Of a stretch of 64,000 nt of DNA, positions 3,015-57,612 are shown one piece after another. Where the stretch lies: NCBI GenBank assembly GCA_964188305.1, contig OZ076903.1; one strand, 5' to 3'. The translations under genes and the position numbers were made by a program. Each line of letters starts with the position of its first letter. Position 1 is the first letter of the stretch. Origin of the DNA: Podarcis bocagei. Its lineage: Eukaryota. A model generated the notes under the pieces. It was not told the DNA's origin. It searched no databases and saw only the letters and a program-made list of their open reading frames with translations.

Positions 3015-5267
3015 AATGTATAATTTTATCTCTCTAATAGAATCTTACTGCATTTCTATTGTTTATCAGGGGCTGCTATTAGGTACAGTTTTGTTCTACC
3101 GGTAATCAGTTTTATTTTTCCATCTTAAATAAGCGATCACATTTTGTTACCAAACTATCTGCGTCAGTGTGATTGTTTAATATGACTATGTTGCCTATGT
3201 TATGTGGTTGCAAAACTACCTTGTAATACTCCTGGAAAGTTCTTTTATTAGCATTTCACTGAAGCTGTTAACAATTAGAAGGGTTAAATAACTGTTTCTG
3301 ATTGAATATGTATAACAGTTCTAAATATAGCATTAAAATTATATATCCTCTCTAGATAGGACCAACGTATAAAAAATTTATAACAGAATTGCAGTCTAAT
3401 CTTATAATTTAGTGGAAGATCTGTTTTAAGAAAATCTGATTAAATCTTGTCTCTGTTTTCCACTGAAAATCTACTGCAAAAATGAATTTAATTGCACTAG
3501 AAATGGAATATGGCCAGCAGAGTGGTTTTGAGAGTTCTGTAAAATTAAGCAATTAAACAAAATGTATCTGATTCGCGCACCACCACCCCCAGCTCACATT
3601 GGTCGTTCTGTATTAAGTGAGGGTGATAAGATGATGAAATGTTGGAGCATTCTTATTTTTAGACATTTTTCTTTAAGAATACCTCAAGGTTCATACTACA
3701 CATTAGACCTATTGAATTCTTCAAGAAACAATTCCATGACCAGATTAGTTAATATTTTCATTTGAAGCTTTTATAGTAGGAGTGGTTTTGGTGAAACTTA
3801 ATGGGTTTGCCAACTTTGAGTTGTTACCAACACTGCTGAGGACTGGGGAAATTATCATAGATAAACAGAACGGCTGGGATCCAAAGAGCTATTTTAGGAA
3901 CACCATGGGATTTAGTCTACACAGTGCTCCTTCAAAAACAAAACGCTCCCACACCACAAACTGCTTTTGAAAGGCTGCTTAGTAGAAAAGTAGTTTGAAC
4001 ATAGCCGGTTAGTGGGTATGAATCAAACTGGTATTTGGGAAAAGAAGTCCATTCGCCCTTGAATATCTCAAACTAGTTTCATAGTTCTTTAGCTCTCAGC
4101 CAGTGACTCCATGGTTTGATCTAGTGGAAATGGGGCTAGCGGTGTTGTTTTTAAACCAATCAAACAATTTATTGTTGTAACTAAAATGAGTCCCCACAGC
4201 CACAACAAGGATAAAGCAACCTCTTGCAAATGCACTGTTTACAGTATAGGCTTCTATGAACCTGATCAGTGTCTTGATGGCTACCACAAATACTGTCGCT
4301 CATAATGATTGAAAGTCTGTCTTAACTAAATCATCAGATTCTCCTGTAGCTGAGAATTGGGATCCATGATATGGGATTGTCTCCGCCCATCTCGCCACTG
4401 ACAGGAACTCTTTTTAAAAAAAACTTTGAGGATACTTCCGGGGAGAGACAAACCCCTTGCCTCTGTTCCATTTCCGGCCTTCACCAGAAGGGAGGGTTAC
4501 AGGATAGAGTTCGACCAATTCCCTCCCCCTCACTTCATTTCCTCCCCACATTCCCCAAAAACACAAAAGCCTCAGCAAAGGCGTCCTTTGGGAGAAGAGT
4601 GCTCAAGGAGGAGGTTGGGTCCACAGGGGCTCCCACCCATAGCTGTCAACCGTCCCTTATTTGGCGGGAAACTCCCTTATCCCAGCGCCGTGTCCCGCTG
4701 CTGTCCCTTATTGATGATGTTCCTTAAATTTCCCGGGTTTCAAAGGAAGCAGCTCCTCTCCCTCCCTCCCTCCCTGCCGGCCAGGGAGGAGGGAGGCTCC
4801 AACTGTGTTGCTTGGCTGCGTTGCTCACCCAATAAGGAGTCTAAGAATGACTGGGGGGTGGAGCTTGCATGCCTTGTGCCGATCAAATTGGCCGCATTGC
4901 CTGGGGACTCGCCTTTGCTCAGTGCTTTCCAGCGGAGAGGTGATGGTGCTTTTCCTTGCTGCATCCCCTTTGCTGGGTTGCTGCGCTGTGGGAACCACTG
5001 CTTGAGGCTTCGTTTGGCTGCTGGCTGGGCTTTCTGCCTTTGGCTCGGAGGGGTTCAGAAGTTGAACATACCTGTGCTTGGAAAATCCCTTATTTTGGCT
5101 GCTGATCCCTTATTATCAAGGCTGCTGGTCCCTTATTTTCAAATTTGTAAGTTGACAGCTATGCTCCCACCTGACCTGGACATTGCAGCGATACATCCCA
5201 TATCATGGATCCCACTTACTGTGATAAGTTTCTTCTCTGTAGGGAGAATTGGGATCCGGCCCTCCCA

Positions 5268-8200
5268 GGTGCGGCTGTGTGCACAGGGGAGGGAGGTATG
5301 GCGGTGGGGGCAGATGTTATAGGCGAAGGGGATCGAGATATGGATACGCTCGTACCCCTTCCAATCTGCGCCCCATCCCGAGGGACGATGGTAGGGTGAG
5401 CAAGGATTACTCACCTCTGTCACTGGTGCTGTGCAATGCCATGTCTATAGGCAATAAAACTGCCACCCTGCGGGATTTCTTTATCTCGCAGGGGGTCGAC
5501 CTGGCTTGTGTGATGGAGACCTGGGTGCGCGAAGGGGCAACTTACCTTACGAGAGATGGCGCCCCCGGGTTTCTCCGTCCTCCACCAGTCGCGGACTGTG
5601 GGCCGGGGGGAGGGGTGGCATTATTAATCTGGGAAGATTGTCCTTTCAGGGCTCTACCATCGCCATCGATCCCTGGCATCGAATGTATTGGCCTAGTGTG
5701 GGGCTCCGAGGAGGGCTTGGCTATCTGGCTGGTGTACCGGCCACCTAGCGCACCAGCAGCCACCCTGTCAGGCCTGCTGGAGGCGGTGGCCGGCTGGGCC
5801 TTGGAGTTCCCTAACCTATTGGTATTGGGGGACTTTAACATCCATGCTGATGCCACTCCCTCCTCACAGGCTCTGGACCTGGTGTCTTCCATGGCGACAC
5901 TAGGGCTATCCCAGTTTGTTTCGGGCCCCACACATCAAGCAGGCCACACGCTGGATTTGATCTTTGGCATAGGTATAGATGTGATCATGTCTCCTTCGAT
6001 GAAGGTGCCATGGTCTGATCACTATGCTCTGAAAACCAGGATTGACTTTCCACCCCCACCCTGCTTAGGTGGCGAGCCGATTTGGGCTCGCCCGCAGAGG
6101 CTGATGGACCCTGATAGATTCCGTCAAGCCTTGCGGGACCTTGCTTCCCCTGGCGACTCATTGACTGAGCTTGTTGAGGGCTGGAATACCCAGCTCCTGG
6201 CAGCCATCGATGAGATCACACCTAAGCGCCCTCTGCGACCCCGCAGAAACCGGGCTCCCTGGTTTACTGAGGAGCTCCGGAAAATGAAGCGGGATCTCAG
6301 ACGGCTAGAGCGAGTATGGCGGGGTGCCCGTGACGGAACCTCAAGAACACCTTATAGGGCTTTTGTGAAAACCTATGAGATGGCGGTGAAGGCTGCTAAG
6401 AAGTCATACTTCTCTGCCTCCATTGCATCTGCTAGCTCTCGCCGAGCGCAATTATTTAGTATAATCAGGTCTTTAACGTCCCTTGTGGGACAGCCAAATT
6501 TAAATAACAATTTGACACACAGCTGTGAGGCATTTGCGAGCTTTTATGCGGAGAAGGTCTTGTTGCTCCGCCATGACCTCCCTGCCAATTTGGATACAAT
6601 AAAGGAACTAGAGGCCCCTCGATTGTCCTCGGGTCCAGTATTGGACCATTTCAACCGGATATCCTCAGCCGATGTGGACAGACTCCTCCGAGCTGGAAAG
6701 CCCACCACCTGTCCTCTCGACCCGTGCCCGTCTTGGCTGATTAGAGCGTGTCCAGACGAGGTGCGGGCCCTCCTGGGGGATATCATCAATTTGTCCCTTG
6801 GCACGGGGACATTCCCAGGGGAACTGAAGGAGGCAGTGGTGTGCCCGCTCTTAAAGAAAACATCATTAGATCCTTTAGATCTATCCAATTACCGCCCGGT
6901 TTCGAATCTTCCGTTCCTGGGTAAGGTGATTGAGAGAGCGGTTGCTGAACAGCTTGGTGGGTTTCTGGATGAAACATCGGCTCTGGATCCATTCCAGTTC
7001 GGCTTCTGCGCTGGTCATGGGACCGAGACGGCTCTGGTTGCCCTAACAGATGGTCTTCGTAGACAGCTGGATCGAGGCGGGTCGGGGCTGCTGATTCTTC
7101 TAGATCTGTCAGCAGCTTTCAACATGGTCGATCACGAACTTCTGGACCACCACCTTGCCGACGTGGGGATTCAGGGCACAGTCCTTCAATGGCTGCGCTC
7201 GTTTCTCTCTGGTCGGGGACAGAGGGTGGCGCTTGGGGGGGAATTGTCATCGCGCCACTCCTTGGGGTGTGGAGTACCTCTCTCTCCCCGATACTCTCCC
7301 CGATGCTTTTCAACATCTTTATGCGCCCCCTCGCCCAGCTTGTTCGGAGTTTTGGGCTGGGTTGCCATCAGTATGCCGATGACACCCAACTCTATCTGTT
7401 GATGGATGGCCATCCTGACTCGGCCCCAGACACACTGACCAGATGTTTGGAAGCTGTGGCTGGATGGTTACGTGGGAGCCGGTTGAAGCTAAATCCTTCA
7501 AAGACAGAGGTCCTGTGGCTGGGACGGGACGATATGGGATTGGGGGGGGCAACTCCCATCTCTTGCGGGGGTGCAATTAGTGCCAGCACCGTCCGTTAAG
7601 AGTTTGGGTGTAATCTTCGACACCTCCCTTTCCACGGAGGCGCAGATTGCAGCTATAACAAAGGCGGCATTTTCCCATCTCCGCCAAGCTAAGCAGTTGG
7701 CTCCTTACCTCTCTCGCCCTGACCTAGCCACTGTGATCCATGCGACGGTCACCTCCAGACTGGATTATTGTAACTCGCTCTACATGGGGCTGCCCTTGAG
7801 ACTGACCCAGAAACTCCAGCGGGTGCAGAATGCTGCAGCAAGACTCCTTACAAGGTCTTCGCTGCGAGATCACATTCACCCGGTGCTATACCAGCTGCAC
7901 TGGCTCCCGGTGGAGTACAGGATCAGGTTTAAGGTGCTGGTTTTAACCTTTAAAGCCCTATACGGCCTAGGACCCTCGTACCTACGGGACCGCCTCTCCT
8001 GGTATGCCCCACAGAGAAACTTACGGTCTTCAAATAAAAACATCTTGAAGGTCCCAGGCCACAGAGAGGTTAGGGTGGCCTCAACTAGAGCCAGGGCTTT
8101 TTCGGCTGTGGCTCCGATCTGGTGGAACACTCTGTCACAAGAGACCAGGGCCCTGCGGGACTTGACATCTTTCCGCAGGGCCTGCAAGACAGAGCTGTTC

Positions 8201-8405
8201 CACCAGGCCTTTGGCCAGGGCACAGCCTGACTCCCTCCCTCGGCAATTTTCGCGGCGCTCTGGCCCAATGGTTGCCAGTGGCTTGAATTAATTAATTTTA
8301 TAATGAATGATTTTAGAATGTTGTTTATGCTGTACTTTTGTGCTGTTTTATTGTTGTTAGCCGCCCTGAGCCCGGCTTCGGCTGGGGAGGGCGGGATATA
8401 AATAA

Positions 8406-8472
<67 letters not shown>
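5268..8472 (+). mobile_element. L2-clade LINE, 5'-truncated near the ORF2 start; near-complete ORF2 (APE endonuclease + RT) with frameshifts, 3'UTR and (TTA)n tail
   Basis: APE motifs ETW, YRPP, GDFN, HTLDL, SDH; RT motifs NYRPVSNL, LDLSAAF, YADD (7372-7383), LKLNPSKTE; L2 C-terminus SRLDYCN and LHWLPVEYRIRFK; stop at 8228-8230; ORFs 5249..7402, 7189..7599 and 7571..8230. The 5' boundary is approximate. Confidence 0.93.
8408..8472 (+). repeat. (TTA)n microsatellite, tail of the L2
   Basis: About 21 TTA units directly after the L2 3'UTR. Confidence 0.95.
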
Positions 8473-9284
8473 GGACGCTGCATCTCAGAGGGTTGCCCAG
8501 AGTGGCATGAGACTTTGCCCCAAGGTCCGGGGGCCTCCGATCTTTCCTTCCCAGCTTTTCTTCCTCTTCAACCCATATCGGGGTTATTTCCCTTCTCCCC
8601 TTCACCTGTGCTAGTTACAGGGGCCAGTAGGAATTTTTCCTTTCATGCAGTGAACAGAGGGGCATGTTCCATTGAAATCACTGTATTCCTCTCCTGTTCC
8701 TTAGTTGTTATTTATGGCTGTAACTACTTGCTTAAGCAGGAGCGGCACTGGAACAAGGGGCTTGTCTCTCCCCTGAAATATCCTCATAGCTTTTTTTTTA
8801 AGACTTCCTGCCACTGGTGAGATGGACGGAGACAACCCCATATCATGGATCCTAGTTCTCCCTACAGATAAGGAACTTATCACGATAAGTATCAGCGTTC
8901 ATTTTATCTTGATATAGGATCAGAACAAATAGAGTTGTGAAGCACATAATTTCATACCATGTCAATTTTCCATGTGCCACAAAGACATAGCAAGTATATA
9001 TCAGAAATTTTGAAATCTTCAGATACAGGAAGGTTTGGAACCTTAAAGGTTGCTATGGTATTTAAAAATGGGGGGGGGGCGTTATACTAGAGCAATGGAA
9101 ATCAGTCATCACCAGTAAAGGGAACTTCGTTGTACAGAGGCAGTATATGTTGAGAAAGGCAAGAGTGGAAGGCTGTAGCCTTTGTGGTAACCCCTGTGCT
9201 CTTCTGCCAACAAGTCTGGGTGTTGTGCTGCAAAGGAACAAAAGGGACTGAGTTGGGCTCCTGTTTTGCACCCTGAGCTGGAGA

Positions 9285-26830: not shown

Positions 26831-28869
26831 CAGCCCCAGCTGGAACGAAGTAGTCAAAGCACCTTATAGTTTCCAGAAGCTCAAAACTGCAAGAATGAAA
26901 ATGGCCTGGTGTTTTTAAAAAGCACATTGTGACAATTCTTAAACCCTCACATAGGTTTATAAGCATTTTCAAAATGGGAAGACTTCACAGTTGAGAATAA
27001 TAGAAATAAATTAATATAATTGCACAGAAGTCATTCCCTACAATATCTGGGTTAGTGGATGACAAGGCCTCAGTTTTTCACTAAAAGTATATGATTTGTT
27101 TTTAAAGTGAAGGTATTTGTATTGATTCAAATGAAGAATTTGTACTGATGGCTTTTCAAAGATTTATGTGACTAGCAAAAAAAGAAGATATTTAATTTGC
27201 TGGTAACAGCTTTGCACAGTCCAATTAGAGTAGCAGAGACATATAATTGAAAAGCACTTAAGGACTAGAATATCTTTCATCCTCTCTCAATGTGTGGATA
27301 AACAGTACCCCCTGCCAGTCCCCAAAGTAGTGTGAGTAATAGACTACTGGCAGTTCTGCTTCATATTTACTCATTCTATTATCTTCAAGGATAACATCTG
27401 AAGATCCACATATAAATCTATAGAATGTATAAATATGGACATAAATTCCAGGGTAATTTTGTTTGAAAACAGATATCATGCAGCAGAGCGGTCAGGATTA
27501 AAGATAGCGTAAGCTGCATTTTTGTTATGTTATCAAGAGTTCAGAATTCAGTTGACAGGAAATAGCATGAATTTGTCCAGACATCTGCAATACACCTGAA
27601 GGAAATAGACAATTATTCAAAGGCAGAATTTGCTGTCAGAATTAAGTTCCAACTTGCAGCAAACCATGCTTAGGGAAGTAGAACTGTTGTTTGACACAAA
27701 CCATGCTATGCAATAGGCTGGCAAAGGAGTATTGGAAAACAAGCTGTGGTTTGTACAAGTTACGTTTTGGTATGCGGTCTGAATAGAAAACCCATAGTTA
27801 AGTCCCTTGCTTCCAGAGGCCATTGCATCCAGGGACAAGATTATTGAGCAGGGAAGTAACTCTAAACCATGGTTTGCTTGATTGTGTCAGCACTTAAGAT
27901 ATTGCTGTGTTAGACATAGGAATGAGTGTTGGCCTCGGCAGTGCTTTTTCTGGTGCTACTCAGTAGCACACAGTCCCGCCACCACCACCCCCCAGAGATG
28001 CTCAGCTGCATGGGGAGCCATGGCATGAACAAAGCCCCTCCGGTGCCTGGGCACCTTCTCCCCGGGGCTGACCGGAGTACCCAAGTCCCACTCCCCAAGG
28101 GGTGCAAGAATGGGGGGGGGGTGCAGCTTGTGATGTGCTTCTGGACTCAGCTGCTGGCTGGGTGCCCCCTGGTCACCTCACTGGCGGTGCTCACAGTGGC
28201 TGTTGCAGGGCAGGGGGAGAAGCTGCCGGTGAATACCGTCCCCCTCCCGTCCCCCAAAGGCACTGGGCCTCAGCTTCACCCTCTCTGGTTTTGTACTGTC
28301 CTGCTCTTCCATCACAGCCTGAGGAGGAGAGGAGAGGGATTCACTTCCATTTCGGATTAACAGCAGTCTGGTGTTGCATCTGAATCATAAACTGGGGTCA
28401 TACTATGATTTATTGAAACAAGCCAGCTTCATAAACCACAGTCTGCAGTTGGCTTGTTTCAGCAAACCATAATGAAGACTGTCCACGGCTTGCACGGCTT
28501 CGTGTTTCCTGCTGAATGGTGCTTTCGTCAAAAAGGCAAACAGAATTCTTTGAGCTCCTTGCAGCCATAATGGAAGCGGAGAGGAGAGGGGAAGATACAT
28601 GAGCCCAAGGCTTGACTGCACTCATTCCTGTAACAATAAACCTTAGTTCATTGTTCTGCCCAAGCACAGCCTATAGTTTGGGTTTAAATTATTATTTTAG
28701 CAGAAACCATGGTTTGCCATGGCAATTGAACAGTTCACAATATTCTTTCCCCCTTCTTTAAAAATTTTTAGCCATGAAGCTAACATTGCTAAGTCACTTT
28801 TTGATAATTCAAGTATATTTACAGAACCAGATTGAATCTCTTCTAAATGTTCTGTTATGTTATGTGGAC

Positions 28870-44924: not shown

Positions 44925-45300
44925 CAGAGGTTTTCAACCCTTCTGAGTCCATGACTCCCTTGACCAGCTACATTCTTTTTTGCAGCTCTCCTGTGGGGCT
45001 CAGGAATCCAGTTGTGCCTGCAGGGCTGGCAGCCTCTCACCCTTTTTCAAACACCTTCCCTTGTGGAGTGTTTCCTCAGCCTCCTCTCCTCTCCCCTCTC
45101 CTTGGGAGTCCTCTGAGCAGCCACTGGAGATTATAGCAAGGGCTGTTGAAATAAACGGCTGTCTTGGGGAGGCAGAGACACCAGAGGGCATCAGAGGAGG
45201 GAGGGAAGGGAAGAGGGACAGAGACCAGTGTTGCCATGACACCCCTGACCATCCTTCAAGGCACCCCAGGGTGCCACAGCACACTGGTTGAAAATCACTG
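44925..45300. mobile_element. hAT-Charlie-like MITE
   Basis: cagaggttttcaacc...ggttgaaaatcactg; TSD gtctacac/ttctacac. Confidence 0.8.
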
Positions 45301-46409: not shown

Positions 46410-46591
46410 CTCCAGTGGCTTTTAGACAACTATGAAACAGCAGAAGGAGTGAGTCTCCCCAGAAGTACCCTCTACAACCACTACTTGAGACACTGTCAGG
46501 AGCATAAATTGGACCCAGTCAATGCTGCCTCTTTTGGAAAACTAATAAGGTCAATTTTCATGGGCCTACGAACCAGAAGATTGGGAACCAG
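46410..46591 (+). CDS. RFX3: RFX3 coding exon 5, DNA-binding domain part 1: [60 protein letters not shown](R)
   Basis: aaatag| ... ag|gttagt; 182 nt; signature RFX winged-helix sequence. Confidence 0.98.
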
Positions 46592-47992
46592 GTTAGTGTA
46601 AGGAAGCAAAGTTCTGAGTTAACGGGACAGAGTGTACTCCCTCTAATAGCAAATTTAGTGCTCCCGTGACAATAGACATGAAGCTAAAACATGATCATTG
46701 AGAAACAAAAGGTGGGAATCTGCATGTTCAAGAAAACTCCAAATTGCAGAAGTACAAAAAATGTTGTTGGTTTGTTTTTGTTTTTGTTTTAAAAAAGACC
46801 TAAAGCCCCACTTCCCTCCAGTCTCAGTTTGCAGTGATTGGCCAGTGATTGGCAGTCTGGTGGTTAGTCAGAGGAGACGTGATAGAGCTTTATAGATGAG
46901 TGGAGAAAGTGGATGAAGAGATGATTTTCTTGCCCTCATAATATTAGAGCAAAGGGCAATTCTGTGAACCTTATGGTGGGAGATTCAGGACAGGCAAGGT
47001 CTTTTAACATAGCACAGAATTAAACCATGGAATTTTCAATCACAGTATCTGTGTTCACCACCACTAATTTGTTCTTGCAGGATAAGGCTATTAATGACTG
47101 CTTATTAACTGTATATTAATTGTAATATTACTTATTAGCTATATATTCCTTCTTGCTCAAGGTAGTTTACATGGTTCCCCCTCATCCTTCTTCCTTTTTA
47201 TCTTCACAGCAACCCTGTGAAGTAGGTTAGACTGAGAGATAGTCCACCTAGAACTCTAAACTAGAACACTGCTGTTTGGAATAAGGTTGTGGTTCAACTC
47301 CCACAACAAAGTGCTGTAAAAACAAAGTTTGTGCAATTGTCTAAATGTACTGCCCAATTCATTAAAATGTGTATTAAGCACTTTCTTCTCCCATATTGCT
47401 CTTTAAGACATTGCCAAAGCACCAGCTTCTATCAAGCATTCTAAGAGGTACATATATTAATTAGTACATGCAAGCTATATTATTCATTGCAGCATGTAAG
47501 GTGCTTCATTTAACAAATGGACTTAGATTAAATACGGACAAAATGCTTCTGTCCATTTTTCCAAATGTTACACCTCATTTTTCTGAATGAATCAGCCCCC
47601 TTTCAAGCAAGCTGTCCTTGGAACAAAGGTGTACGGTTTGCAGATTCAGCCTGTGTAAGAAACGTCAACAGCCCAGATAACACGCATTTCAGAATACAAG
47701 GGTACTTTGTGTATTGTCACAGCTGATTGTATGCCTTGAATGCTCTACAGTAAATGCTTCAAGTGCTGCCATATGGATGAAACCAGCAGCATGTGGAATG
47801 TGAACAAACTTACATAGAATAATAGTGAAGGACTTATGAGCTACTGGTGCCTGTAGTGCCAGATTCAGGCAGGATCATTAACTGAAGAAAGGCAGCCCAC
47901 AGCTTCTTTGGATACAGCTGGTTGCAGAAAGGCATGGCACACAGACAGGGATTCTACTTCTGATAATAGGCATGTCCTAAGATGTGCTTTGC

Positions 47993-49884: not shown

Positions 49885-50004
49885 GGGGAACTCCAAATAT
49901 CATTACTATGGGATTCGTGTCAAGCCAGACTCCCCTCTAAATCGGCTACAAGAGGACATGCAATATATGGCTATGAGACAGCAACCCATGCAGCAGAAAC
50001 AAAG
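49885..50004 (+). CDS. RFX3: RFX3 coding exon 6, DBD end: GNSKYHYYGIRVKPDSPLNRLQEDMQYMAMRQQPMQQKQ(R)
   Basis: ttcccaaag| ... ag|gtacag; 120 nt; in ORF 49766..50134. Confidence 0.97.
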
Positions 50005-51365
50005 GTACAGTCCTGCCAAGCTGACCAGACCCCTTAGAAACCAGCATCTTTTTCTGCATCTCTCTATCGCGGGAGTGTTTAGTCAGGGAGCAGTAACCTC
50101 TCCTTTTATTAGACCACATAACTTCTCTAGCTGAAAGTTTACCTGCAGTTGCCTCAATCTTACACCCTTTTAGACACTATGTAAAACCTTACCTTTTGGG
50201 TTGGGCTTTTAGATGCTGATGCGTTAAGTGGTTTTTGTAATGTTATTAATTATGTAATTTCTGAGAATTATTTTCATATTTCTGTTTATTTTGTGTTAAG
50301 TTTTTATATTACCTTATTTTCAAAAGCTGGCCTGTGACTATTATTCATGAAGGTTGGTATAAAAACAAACAAACAAACAAACAAACAAACCACCTTTTAT
50401 CTGGAGAGAAATAGTTTTGCTTAAGGGCATTATCTCATATTTTTATATCAAAATTGAGTGAGGAGTGGTTAAATGTAAAAGTGTTTGTGTTTCTAGAATC
50501 TCCTAAACTTAAGAAGAGAATTTGGCCTTTAATGAGAGGAGATAGAATTATGTGTGCCACCCTATGGCTAAGTTTGGAATGCTATTTTTTTTTTAAAAAA
50601 AAAAAAAAAAGCTGAGATCCAATGCCATGCCGGCAGACATGACAACATTTCCCTTCCTCCCTGCCCCCCCCGATGAAAAAAATCTGTTGTGGAAGGTCTT
50701 CCAGTGCTCCAGAGCAGATTTTGGGGGTGCCTGGGGGGCTGCAAAGCAGGAGGGCAGGGAGGGTAACTCTCATTTGCACAAGTGGATGTTCGTTGTGGAA
50801 GCAGGATGGGTCGGGAAGGAAGTAAAGTAAACACGACTTTATGAATGCTTTGTGCTGCTTTTAACTTAGAGCATTAATGCACAGTATACAAAATTTGTGA
50901 TGCACCATTTGAAATTATGAAGGATGAGTGGAATTGCTTGTTGTGTTGTGGAATAAACTGCTTACATCAAAAAGGGAAATGTTATTCAAAACAAGTCCTT
51001 TGAACATATTAATTCCAGGTCTGGTCAGAAGTCTCAATGCAGGGTGTGGGAATGAAGGAGAGATCCATGTATACAACCATAATTTTTTTTAGCTTTGTAA
51101 AAGAGCAGCATGACTCCATCCTACCTAAAGTGGTCACTGGATTCTGGCCAGAATCTCCACTTGAACGCATCTGGTATAGCCGTGGGCGAATCTAGTGTAA
51201 TTCCTCACATTATTTCCAAACTGAGTTGACGTACGTCTGAGCCAGTTCCCTTAGTGAGCTGAGGAGCACTTTCTGAACATTTTGCTTTTTTCAAGTAGCA
51301 CATATCCATTTACTTGTCAAATTATTATTTTTTAAGATACTCTTACAAAGCAACTAGAGACAGCA

Positions 51366-54711: not shown

Positions 54712-54833
54712 GTACAAGCCTATGCAGAAAGTGGATGGAGTCACAGACGGTTTCACAACAAGTGGTCAACAGACAGGCACATCTGTTGAACAAACTGTAA
54801 TTGCTCAAAGTCAACATCATCAACAGTTTTTGG
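54712..54833 (+). CDS. RFX3: RFX3 coding exon 7: YKPMQKVDGVTDGFTTSGQQTGTSVEQTVIAQSQHHQQFL(D)
   Basis: ttctag| ... g|gtatgt; 122 nt. Confidence 0.96.
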
Positions 54834-55487
54834 GTATGTAGAAAGAATATTGTACTAGTGTCCAAAGAAAAATAACTTGTATAGTTGTTAGTTAAGAATC
54901 AGAACAAAGTTTCTCTTGAAGCTGATCCAGAGTTAACTAACTGAGGAGTGTAACCATTTGTATGAGTTTAACATTATGCAAACATTAGGTTTCTAACAAG
55001 GGTATTGAGCTTAATTAAAGCTGTCATTCATTCTAGAAACAAAGAAATTCATATCCTTACCATGACTTTGCAGCCAAGTCTCATACAAAGAATCGGTGGG
55101 ATTGTTGTCTTTGCACATACATACTATTTTGACAATATATGGGATGAAATACTTCAGACTTATTTATCTGTACCCTCAGCCCATGTGGCCTGATCACACC
55201 TCTGATAGAGAGCATCTTGGAATCCCTTGCTGAGCCAGGCTAGTGTCACAAGTGCTACTACATGGATATAGACTGGGAATATGTTCCAAAAACTACTACC
55301 ATACATACATGAAGTATACTTATTTAATATTGCTAACATAATTGTCATTGAATTAAGACACAATTGAACTTCACATGTAATAGTGAAACCACCTATAATT
55401 AGGTAAAATCCAGCTATAATTTGCTCGTTGTTTTCCCTAAAGACCTTGTATAATATGCAATAATACATAGATATGTCTGGAAATATA

Positions 55488-55746
55488 CCGTCTTTTTTGC
55501 TCTATAAGACTCACTTTTTCCCTCCTAAAAAGTAAGGGGAAATGTGTGTGCGTCTTATGGAGCGAATGCAGGCTGTGCAGCTATCCCAGAAGCCAGAACA
55601 GCAAGAGGGATTGCTGCTTTCACTGCGCAGCGATTCCTCTTGCTGTTCTGGCTTCTGAGATTCAGAATATATTTTTTCTTGTTTTCCTCCTCCAAAAACT
55701 AGGTGCGTCTTGTGGTCTGGTGCGTCTTATAGAGAAAAAAATATGG
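55488..55746. mobile_element. Tc1/mariner (pogo-like) MITE
   Basis: TA-ccgtcttttttgctctataagac...gtcttatagagaaaaaaatatgg-TA. Confidence 0.85.
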
Positions 55747-56427
55747 TAACTACATAGGCAATAGGCACTGTACTAAATTAAAAGAAGCAAATATCAACTG
55801 GTATATTAAAATGTGTGTATTCACTGCATTGGATCCATGTGCCTTATGTGAGCAGGCAGGAAAGCACTTACGGAAGGCAGCCATTTTGAATTTTCCCCAT
55901 GACACTGCCGCCTGCCCTTCCCCTGCCCCCTTCTAGAGGGACCCCCACCCTCCGGAGGGGCTTTTCAGGGGGTTACGGGGGGCAGGAAGTCCCATTGAAC
56001 CCACAGAGTTCTGCTCATCTATCTCTAAATTCAGGCCTCTTGTCTATTCACAGTTTTAACTAGGTTTTCAGACAGGTAAGTTATGCACCACTCGATCTTA
56101 GTATGATTACAGCTGGTTTAAACATTCAAAGAAGTAAGCTTCTCATTCAGTCAGAAATCCTAGAATTTGTGTAAGTATTTCTTAATTCCTATGGATCGAG
56201 CACATACAATTTAGCAGATCTGGCTCCCTTCGCTTAAGATTTTTAATTTAGAAGAATAAAATTTTGATTCCTTTTTAATTGCAACCTATTAAACATAAAA
56301 ACCTTACACCTTCTCAATTTTTAGTCCAACGCTTTGTGACCTTTCTGATATTTATTTCTTTGTATCATTAAATGTTTCCCTAATTAAAGTGGGATTGACA
56401 CACTCTACAATATTTTTCTTTCATTGT

Positions 56428-56441
56428 GTTGCCATGGAAAC
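56428..56441. promoter_or_regulatory. X-box (RFX binding motif) GTTGCCATGGAAAC abutting the 3' splice site of RFX3 coding exon 8
   Basis: 13/14 match to the palindromic consensus GTTGCCATGGCAAC; immediately followed by the acceptor AG (56442-56443). Confidence 0.6.
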
Positions 56442-56443
56442 AG

Positions 56444-56556
56444 ATGCATCTCGAGCACTTCCAGAGTTCGGAGAAGTTGAAATCTCTTCTCTGCCAGATG
56501 GTACTACTTTTGAGGATATTAAGTCATTGCAGAGTCTCTATCGAGAGCACTGTGAG
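56444..56556 (+). CDS. RFX3: RFX3 coding exon 8: (D)ASRALPEFGEVEISSLPDGTTFEDIKSLQSLYREHCE
   Basis: aaacag| ... gag|gtaaga; 113 nt; in ORF 56389..56613. Confidence 0.96.
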
Positions 56557-57067
56557 GTAAGAAAGGAGGATTTGACAATGGCTTCCTCTCATGCAAACCC
56601 TAAGGGCTCATGATGGGATGATACACAGGAATGCATCAGATACAGGAGGCTCTCCATTGCCTGCAAAGCAGAATATTGTGAAGAGTATTAACATTATGCT
56701 TGCTAAATTTGTGTGTGTTTGGAAAACGTGGTTGCGGGCCAAAATACAGAGCGTTTCTGTAGGCTTGCTTTCACCCACCCGGGACAGTTGAGAGTAGATC
56801 AGCAATATGCCGATGCCAAATATGTCCGTCTTTGGTTTGCTGTTGTGTTAAAATTTTGGTTATGAATATTCTATTAACTAAATTCAAAATACACAATCCT
56901 GGACAATTGATACGTCCTTTGATACATCCTAAGCATGTTTACTCAGAAAGAAGTCCCGCCGAATTCAATAGATCATGCTCCCTTAAGTATTCAGGATTGC
57001 AGACAGACTGCTCAATATTTTTCATGCATTCTGTTAAAGAATACCGGTATCTGTGTTGTATTTTTAG

Positions 57068-57183
57068 GCAATATTGGATGTTGTAGTGAACCTTCAGTTT
57101 AGCCTAATAGAAAAATTGTGGCAGACTTTCTGGCGCTATTCTCCCTCAACAACAACCGATGGCACTACCATTACTGAACCAAG
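57068..57183 (+). CDS. RFX3: RFX3 coding exon 9: AILDVVVNLQFSLIEKLWQTFWRYSPSTTTDGTTITEP(S)
   Basis: tttttag| ... ag|gttggt; 116 nt. Confidence 0.96.
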
Positions 57184-57612
57184 GTTGGTAATCTTTTATT
57201 CAAAGTTTGTGAATAGTTTTAGTGCTGTTTTCAAATAAAATAGAAATCTAAAATTTACATACTAAATAGGAATGCTATCTCTGCAGTTCGTTACTAGATT
57301 AAATTGCCGTGTTATGATAACTGCAGTTTATATTTGTACGCATACCATTTTATTTTATGGGAAGAGGCCCAGTTATTTTCTCATGAAATAATATCCAATC
57401 CAAAGACCATTCTTATCACTGCTGCTCTTTGACTAAAGCTCTGGAGGCCATGTACCAGCCATTATTACAACTCTAAGTGCCTCAGGGCAGTTGGATGCGT
57501 TTCAGACATTCCTAATGTTTATTTTTAAAAACTTTGAATTCCATTGTTCTTCTTTTTTATCTTCATGTAAATGCATTTTCATTTATTCATTTGATACATT
57601 TGTTCACACCAG

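Follow-up and report, generated by a model that had tools for sequence, protein, structure and literature searches.

Can one short sequence serve both as a DNA-binding site for a transcription factor and as a splice acceptor in that factor's own gene? The question arises at the end of intron 7 of RFX3 in the lizard Podarcis bocagei, within a 64-kb stretch of contig OZ076903.1 that we analyzed as a whole (hereafter the window). The intron end and the start of coding exon 8 read ...ttcattgtGTTGCCATGGAAACAG|ATGCATCTCGAG (in longer view ...atatttttctttcattgtGTTGCCATGGAAACAG|ATGCATCTCGAG). An initial annotation, made from the letters alone, saw here an X-box, an in-frame ATG in Kozak context and a 3' splice site laid over one another, and proposed an autoregulatory switch yielding an RFX3 without its DNA-binding domain (DBD). 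X-boxes in ciliary-gene promoters are bound by RFX1-3 or DAF-19; their consensus is reportedly GTNRCC(N0-3)RGYAAC or GTHNYY AT RRNAAC, and GGAAAC, GGTAAC and GGCAAC are strong RFX half-sites.

The window holds the 5' part of RFX3 on the + strand, with coding beginning MQTSETG at about 19669. The first exon of the RFX DNA-binding domain lies at 46410-46592 (+; Pfam RFX_DNA_binding PF02257, E=2.1e-25), and the reading frame places the second (GNSKYHYYGIRVKPDSPL...) at 49886-50005 (+). Coding exon 7 (54712-54833, +, start approximate) ends ...QQFL plus a final G, which opens an Asp codon split G|AT over the junction with exon 8 (56444-56558, +; 115 nt, (D)ASRALPEF...YREHCE, GT donor at 56559); exon 9 (AILDVVVNLQF...) follows at 57068-57183 (+). 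Spliced proteins of a tamarin and a bat (P0017, P0065) read QQFL|DASRALPEF, so the acceptor had been assigned correctly. Exon 8 is in phase 1 and its skipping would shift the frame. A Pfam run on protein P0065 from residue 57 onward starts the BCD_RFX domain at the end of exon 8 and leaves the DNA-binding domain entirely upstream, as had been claimed.

Two other parts of the window drew attention. Intron 7 carries a MITE-like element (55486-55748) whose 29-nt terminal inverted repeats are 86% complementary and flank a hairpin with 35-nt arms (55583-55661, 91%); the hairpin gives sub-threshold matches to many unrelated miRNA families. Toward the 5' end, a GC-rich stretch at about 4300-8900 (GC 0.52-0.55) contains a reverse-transcriptase-like ORF near 7187 and has a moderate CpG ratio; it resembles a transposon more than an RFX3 promoter. 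No promoter X-box was found in the 64-kb window, and the RFX3 promoter probably lies outside it.

The acceptor AG of intron 7 (56442-56443, +; spliced-protein junction QQFL|DASR) is directly abutted by the X-box-type palindrome GTTGCCATGGAAAC (56428-56441, no strand assigned; GTTTCCATGGCAAC on the reverse strand), whose last C is the C of CAG. The palindrome is identical to GTTGCCATGGCAAC at 13 of 14 positions, which bears out to the base the match first reported for the last 16 nt of the intron, and it has the form of the X-box consensus, a 13-15 bp imperfect palindrome of two half-sites. Scanning the window, we found no other site within one mismatch of GTTGCCATGGCAAC, against a chance expectation of 0.0065 such sites per 64 kb. 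Nothing else in the window matches the looser consensus GTHNYYATRRNAAC exactly; the palindrome fits it on both strands, and 0.47 chance matches are expected per 64-kb window. At up to two mismatches three sites were seen against 0.26 expected, with TTTGCCATGGCAAT (28713-28726) and GTTGCCATGACACC (45230-45243) carrying two mismatches each; the latter lies about 1.2 kb upstream of the first DNA-binding-domain exon. X-boxes usually stand just upstream of a transcription start site, and this one lies instead at an internal acceptor, the surrounding intron being AT-rich and the RFX3 start codon about 37 kb upstream.

As a splice site, the sequence is atypical. The polypyrimidine tract atatttttctttcatt, read from the sequence, is displaced to 56409-56425 (+; positions -18 to -34), as first described, and pyrimidines make up just 50% of positions -5 to -20, versus 69% at the ordinary pyrimidine-rich acceptor of exon 9, which served as a control. 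No AG occurs between 56388 and 56442, a zone of 54 nt before the exon 8 acceptor AG. The used AG, the tract at -18 to -34 and a CTNAY at about -58 together fit a U2-type 3' splice site. Because no tract adjoins the AG, a U12-type intron was also considered and rejected: the donors inferred from translated exon 7 ends are GTATG or GTATT, not RTATCCTT, and the TCCTTAAT-like motif precedes the acceptor at a distance of about 58 nt, against the 10-26 nt needed for TCCTTRAY. An alternative upstream acceptor at about -55 was discarded as well, the AG there not being conserved across loci.

We compared 10 distinct vertebrate RFX3 loci, namely the window and nine others: a dolphin (Leucopleurus acutus, genomic HiFi reads), a second mammal-like locus, a skink (Prasinohaema, genomic HiFi contigs) and six further vertebrate loci. 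The query was the 74-aa frame left open across the intron end; a word search with it among ORF proteins of 41-243 aa called on public contigs yielded 17 short ones, nearly all starting with M at the ATG in question, and exon 7 was located in the fetched loci through peptide patterns. The 14-mer and its AG are kept without indels in all 10 loci, mammals and squamates included, with constant length and distance to the AG, and every 14-mer runs straight into AG|ATGCATC. The orthologous forms are GTTGTCATGGAAAC (L002, L010), GTTGTCATGGTAAC (dolphin L004 and mammal-like L011), GTTGTTATGGCAAC (L001), GTTGTTATGGAAAC (L008), GTTGTCATGACAAC (L007), GTTGTCATGGATAC (L003) and ATTGTCATGGAAAC (L013), the commonest form being GTTGTCATGGNAAC.

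Nearly all of these variants fit the X-box consensus. Nine of the 10 loci match GTHNYYATRRNAAC on one strand, and the tenth, L013 (ATTGTC), breaks the invariant G1. Changes fall mainly at degenerate positions: 5-6 (Y/Y: TC, TT, CC), 10 (R: G/A) and 11 (N: A/C/T). This combination of conservation and placement of changes is what a genuine X-box would be expected to give. The right half-site alternates among GGAAAC, GGTAAC and GGCAAC; the left half is GTTGTC or GTTGTT in most species, weaker than the GCC form, which among the 10 loci occurs in the window lineage only. Purines are retained at -4, -5, -7 and -8, where they suit a 3' splice site poorly. At the protein level, gene models of a gecko and a godwit add to the conservation, so that the motif and the ATG are kept in other amniotes, a point on which the initial annotation had staked its proposal. 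Any conservation beyond amniotes would rest on loci L001 and L002, the contigs L014 (teleost-like) and L016 (tailed frog) ending short of exon 8. Among invertebrates, the insect-like RFX ORFs P0073, P0076 and P0078, which come from genomic contigs, start MGDG[SN].AIP at the homologous boundary, and other invertebrate RFX proteins read [YF]LGD.

The paralogs, a comparison that had also been called for, have ordinary acceptors at this junction. An RFX1-like contig (with the DASRALPEFPDIDLQGK... version of the exon) shows the ordinary pyrimidine acceptor ttttctcatatcctgtgtttcag at the equivalent position, and a wolverine RFX2 gene model reading ...CYPIFLP|DVSH implies a pyrimidine-rich end with no ATG. 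On these comparisons the acceptor X-box is specific to RFX3.

Conservation extends well past the palindrome. An intron-end block of about 110 nt (56335-56443, +), defined by the 10-locus alignment and a three-species control, contains TTTATTTCTTTGTAT, TTAAAT, CCTAAT, ATTGGCAC/ATTGACAC, CACAAT, the pyrimidine tract and the X-box; its CCTAAT is branch-point-like (yUnAy) and supplies the conserved CTNAY at about -58. Aligned with the distant locus L008, the window shows an identity of 0.90 at -1 to -20, 0.45-0.55 at -21 to -60 and 0.70-0.90 at -61 to -100, falling to background level past -120. The intron downstream of exon 8 gives no alignment past its GTAA/GTAT donor, and the control flank at the exon 9 acceptor is weakly conserved. 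RNAalifold returned no conserved RNA structure in the block (-1.6 kcal/mol, essentially no covariation), and no Rfam family matched it.

A further conserved flank precedes exon 10, where the intron end at about 57568-57612 (TAAATGCATTTTCATTTATTCATTTG.T.CATTTGTTCA..CCAG) is 80-100% identical to L008 over about 45 nt; judged by this alignment, it is a second strongly conserved RFX3 acceptor flank. Third codon positions are also unusually conserved in exon 8 (56444-56558), exon 9 (57068-57183) and exon 10, and in exon 8 the window differs from mammals at 4-5 of 37 third positions (5 of 37 versus dolphin), which suggests that exons 8-10 are under nucleotide-level constraint. Given the exon 10 flank and these third positions, such constraint is not unique to the X-box site.

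The 10-locus conservation, the roughly 110-nt block, the consensus fit in nine of 10 loci and the ordinary acceptors of the paralogs are new observations. By its sequence, then, the element is a palindrome of X-box type, joined to a splice acceptor, deeply conserved and specific to RFX3. Our best reading of it, which we would put at slightly under even odds, is that of a conserved candidate RFX binding site with an incidental ATG. RFX1/2/3 dimers, RFX3 included, would bind the site as an intragenic auto- or cross-regulatory element. Being fused to the AG, the site would also have to double as the 3' splice site, and this would explain why the pyrimidine tract is shifted about 16 nt upstream and the long AG-free zone is kept. 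We infer RFX occupancy, together with whatever it may do to transcription or splicing, from several features: the strict X-box is unique in 64 kb, the 14-mer varies at degenerate positions while staying free of indels across the 10 loci, purines that splice poorly are retained where RFX1-like and RFX2 have ordinary tracts, and neither RNA structure nor Rfam explains the block.

The proposed site resembles ciliary-promoter X-boxes in being a 14-bp imperfect palindrome with an AT spacer, with variants inside the consensus and deep conservation; unlike them, it is a predicted site, intragenic and fused to a 3' splice site. An RFX gene bearing a site for its own family also has precedent. ChIP-seq in mouse cochlea placed Rfx3 at its own promoter and at an intron (bioRxiv 10.1101/2024.09.24.614849), although the text of the preprint gives no location for the intronic peak, which cannot be equated with the exon 8 site. 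RFX1 autorepression, as cited in PMC5838959, acts through sites at the RFX1 promoter. RFX3 autoregulation through the exon 8 site is plausible, and to this extent the proposed switch stands: the motif is conserved and specific to RFX3, and auto- or cross-regulation is conceivable, but a DBD-less RFX3 product has no support.

Several observations count against an RFX site. The whole 110-nt block is conserved, and a general pre-mRNA constraint could carry the motif along with it. The left half-site is weak in most species, L013 lacks G1, and a pyrimidine tract would be no less likely to show the Y-to-Y changes at -11 and -12. The site also lies some 37 kb past the start codon, while the centres of RFX ChIP peaks fall a little upstream of transcription start sites, and a promoter-motif analysis held autoregulation to be uncommon among RFX genes.

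These points lead to the main rival, a serious contender although rather short of even odds, in which the block is read only in the pre-mRNA and its likeness to an X-box is coincidental. Its elements would be a distal branch point, the displaced tract, an AG-exclusion zone and sites for regulators of exon 8 splicing, and it would resemble the conserved flanks of regulated exons, with about 100 nt of conserved upstream intron and a weak tract by the AG. Such a splicing element accounts directly for conservation that is contiguous with the exon, exceeds the X-box and ends at the donor on the far side, for the conserved CTNAY followed by 54 nt free of AG, for the similarly conserved exon 10 flank, and for the pyrimidines that persist at the variable positions -11 and -12; it also accommodates the broken G1 of L013, and chance alone would give 0.47 matches to the looser consensus per 64 kb. 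It does not explain why ATGGNAAC is kept where a canonical 3' splice site favours pyrimidines (-5 to -14) and where RFX1 and RFX2 use ordinary tracts. No nameable splicing-factor motif accounts for GTTGTCATGGNAAC, no conserved RNA structure was found, and by our own estimate a conserved 14-mer would fit the binding consensus of the gene's own product by chance with a probability of about 6e-4 per 100-nt block.

Binding and splicing could also be coupled, with RFX dosage read out co-transcriptionally at the exon 8 acceptor through exon 8 inclusion or use of the intron end; we consider this improbable. DNA-bound factors can alter splicing co-transcriptionally, as CTCF does at CD45 exon 5, and RFX3 similarly has a candidate DNA-protein site beside an exon whose skipping shifts the frame. 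In contrast to such cases, no alternative splicing of RFX3 exon 8 was encountered in this analysis, and an RFX roadblock effect is speculation. If the coupling were true, skipping of the 115-nt exon should trigger nonsense-mediated decay through the frame shift, and one 16-nt sequence would be both the factor's DNA site and an acceptor in its own pre-mRNA, in a feedback predating the split of mammals and reptiles.

The model put forward in the initial annotation went further: RFX binding would drive an internal start or retention of the intron end, and translation from the ATG at 56434-56436 (+), within the X-box core CCATGG and in frame with exon 8, would give a dominant-negative RFX3 without the DBD. 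We regard this as very unlikely. The ATG is the first in-frame one past the TAA at 56296, its context is good (G at -3, in most cases G at +4), and most orthologs sampled have it; a protein begun there would hold the whole BCD_RFX domain without the DNA-binding domain. The in-frame Kozak ATG had been presented as a coincidence in its own right, and this part does not hold: both the ATG and its context are inherent in the X-box core CCATGG and so are not independent of it. Because the ATG comes with the X-box, the three coincidences reduce to two, the X-box lying against the AG and a 1-in-3 chance of frame.

The frame is open and the start stands in a good context, but the added codons do not show the coding constraint, nor the ATG the conservation, expected of an alternative start. 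The residue after M varies among E, V, A, T, D and I (about 45 cluster members) while the third base of its codon is A in nine of 10 DNA loci; a third base fixed under a changing residue is a nucleotide-level pattern, the reverse of a coding one, and it matches RRNAAC. The ATG has become ACG in the P0019 group (65 contigs, in a 90% cluster that also has ATG members), and it is lost in P0006, whose cluster with P0036 (ENA and JGI metagenome assemblies, possibly including human DNA) was compared through short protein strings only; the 493-aa member P0043 of this cluster gave no match to the pattern used to find exon 8 starts. Within the 90% cluster P0019-P0034, near-identical members read MET (ATG) or VVTET (ACG) at the intron end, which suggests that a single species, or a set of very close ones, varies at this codon. 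The sample is itself skewed toward ATG-bearing loci, since gene callers require a start codon.

A gecko gene model (NCBI) does start at the homologous ATG and splices onward, but it is flagged UNVERIFIED_CONTAM and is the sole protein recovered that starts here and splices on; a complete DBD-less RFX3 would measure about 450 aa, above the 41-243 aa that the word searches covered. Among the listed runs that contain the stretch, none is on record as RNA. No CpG island occurs in the region, and given that RFX peaks stand a short way upstream of transcription start sites, transcription from a typical X-box promoter here would begin downstream of the ATG. In a FANTOM5 study most RFX start-site isoforms encode identical proteins, with exceptions for RFX1, RFX4 and RFX8; DBD-less forms were found for RFX4 and RFX8 only, and the RFX3 CAGE start-site isoforms give one identical protein (PMC5838959). 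The proposed RFX3 product would be like the RFX4 and RFX8 forms in combining B/C and dimerization domains without a DBD, but those arise from documented transcription start sites or splice forms. Our literature searches found no match for the exact 14-mer, for a DBD-less RFX3 isoform or for a dominant-negative RFX3 isoform. We therefore read the ATG as a by-product of the X-box core, incidental and not used as a start codon, a reading that shares the tentative standing given above to the RFX site.

That the palindrome is a neutral, functionless resemblance in one genome is hardly credible: the perfect GCC left half is confined to this lineage and the loose consensus is not rare, but from mammals to squamates the 14-mer and its AG are kept free of indels in an intron that otherwise cannot be aligned.

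RFX3 is described as dosage-sensitive, with heterozygous loss leading to autism and neurodevelopmental delay, and a conserved RFX site inside the gene would give a concrete handle on the control of its level. The placement is unusual in that the same 16 bases would serve a DNA-binding protein and the spliceosome, and sequence changes at -3 to -16 of exon 8 could accordingly hit two functions, which bears on variant interpretation. Should binding not be confirmed, what is left is a conserved acceptor of atypical sequence; if it is confirmed, the end of RFX3 intron 7 would be a clean natural case of a transcription-factor site sharing its sequence with a splice signal.
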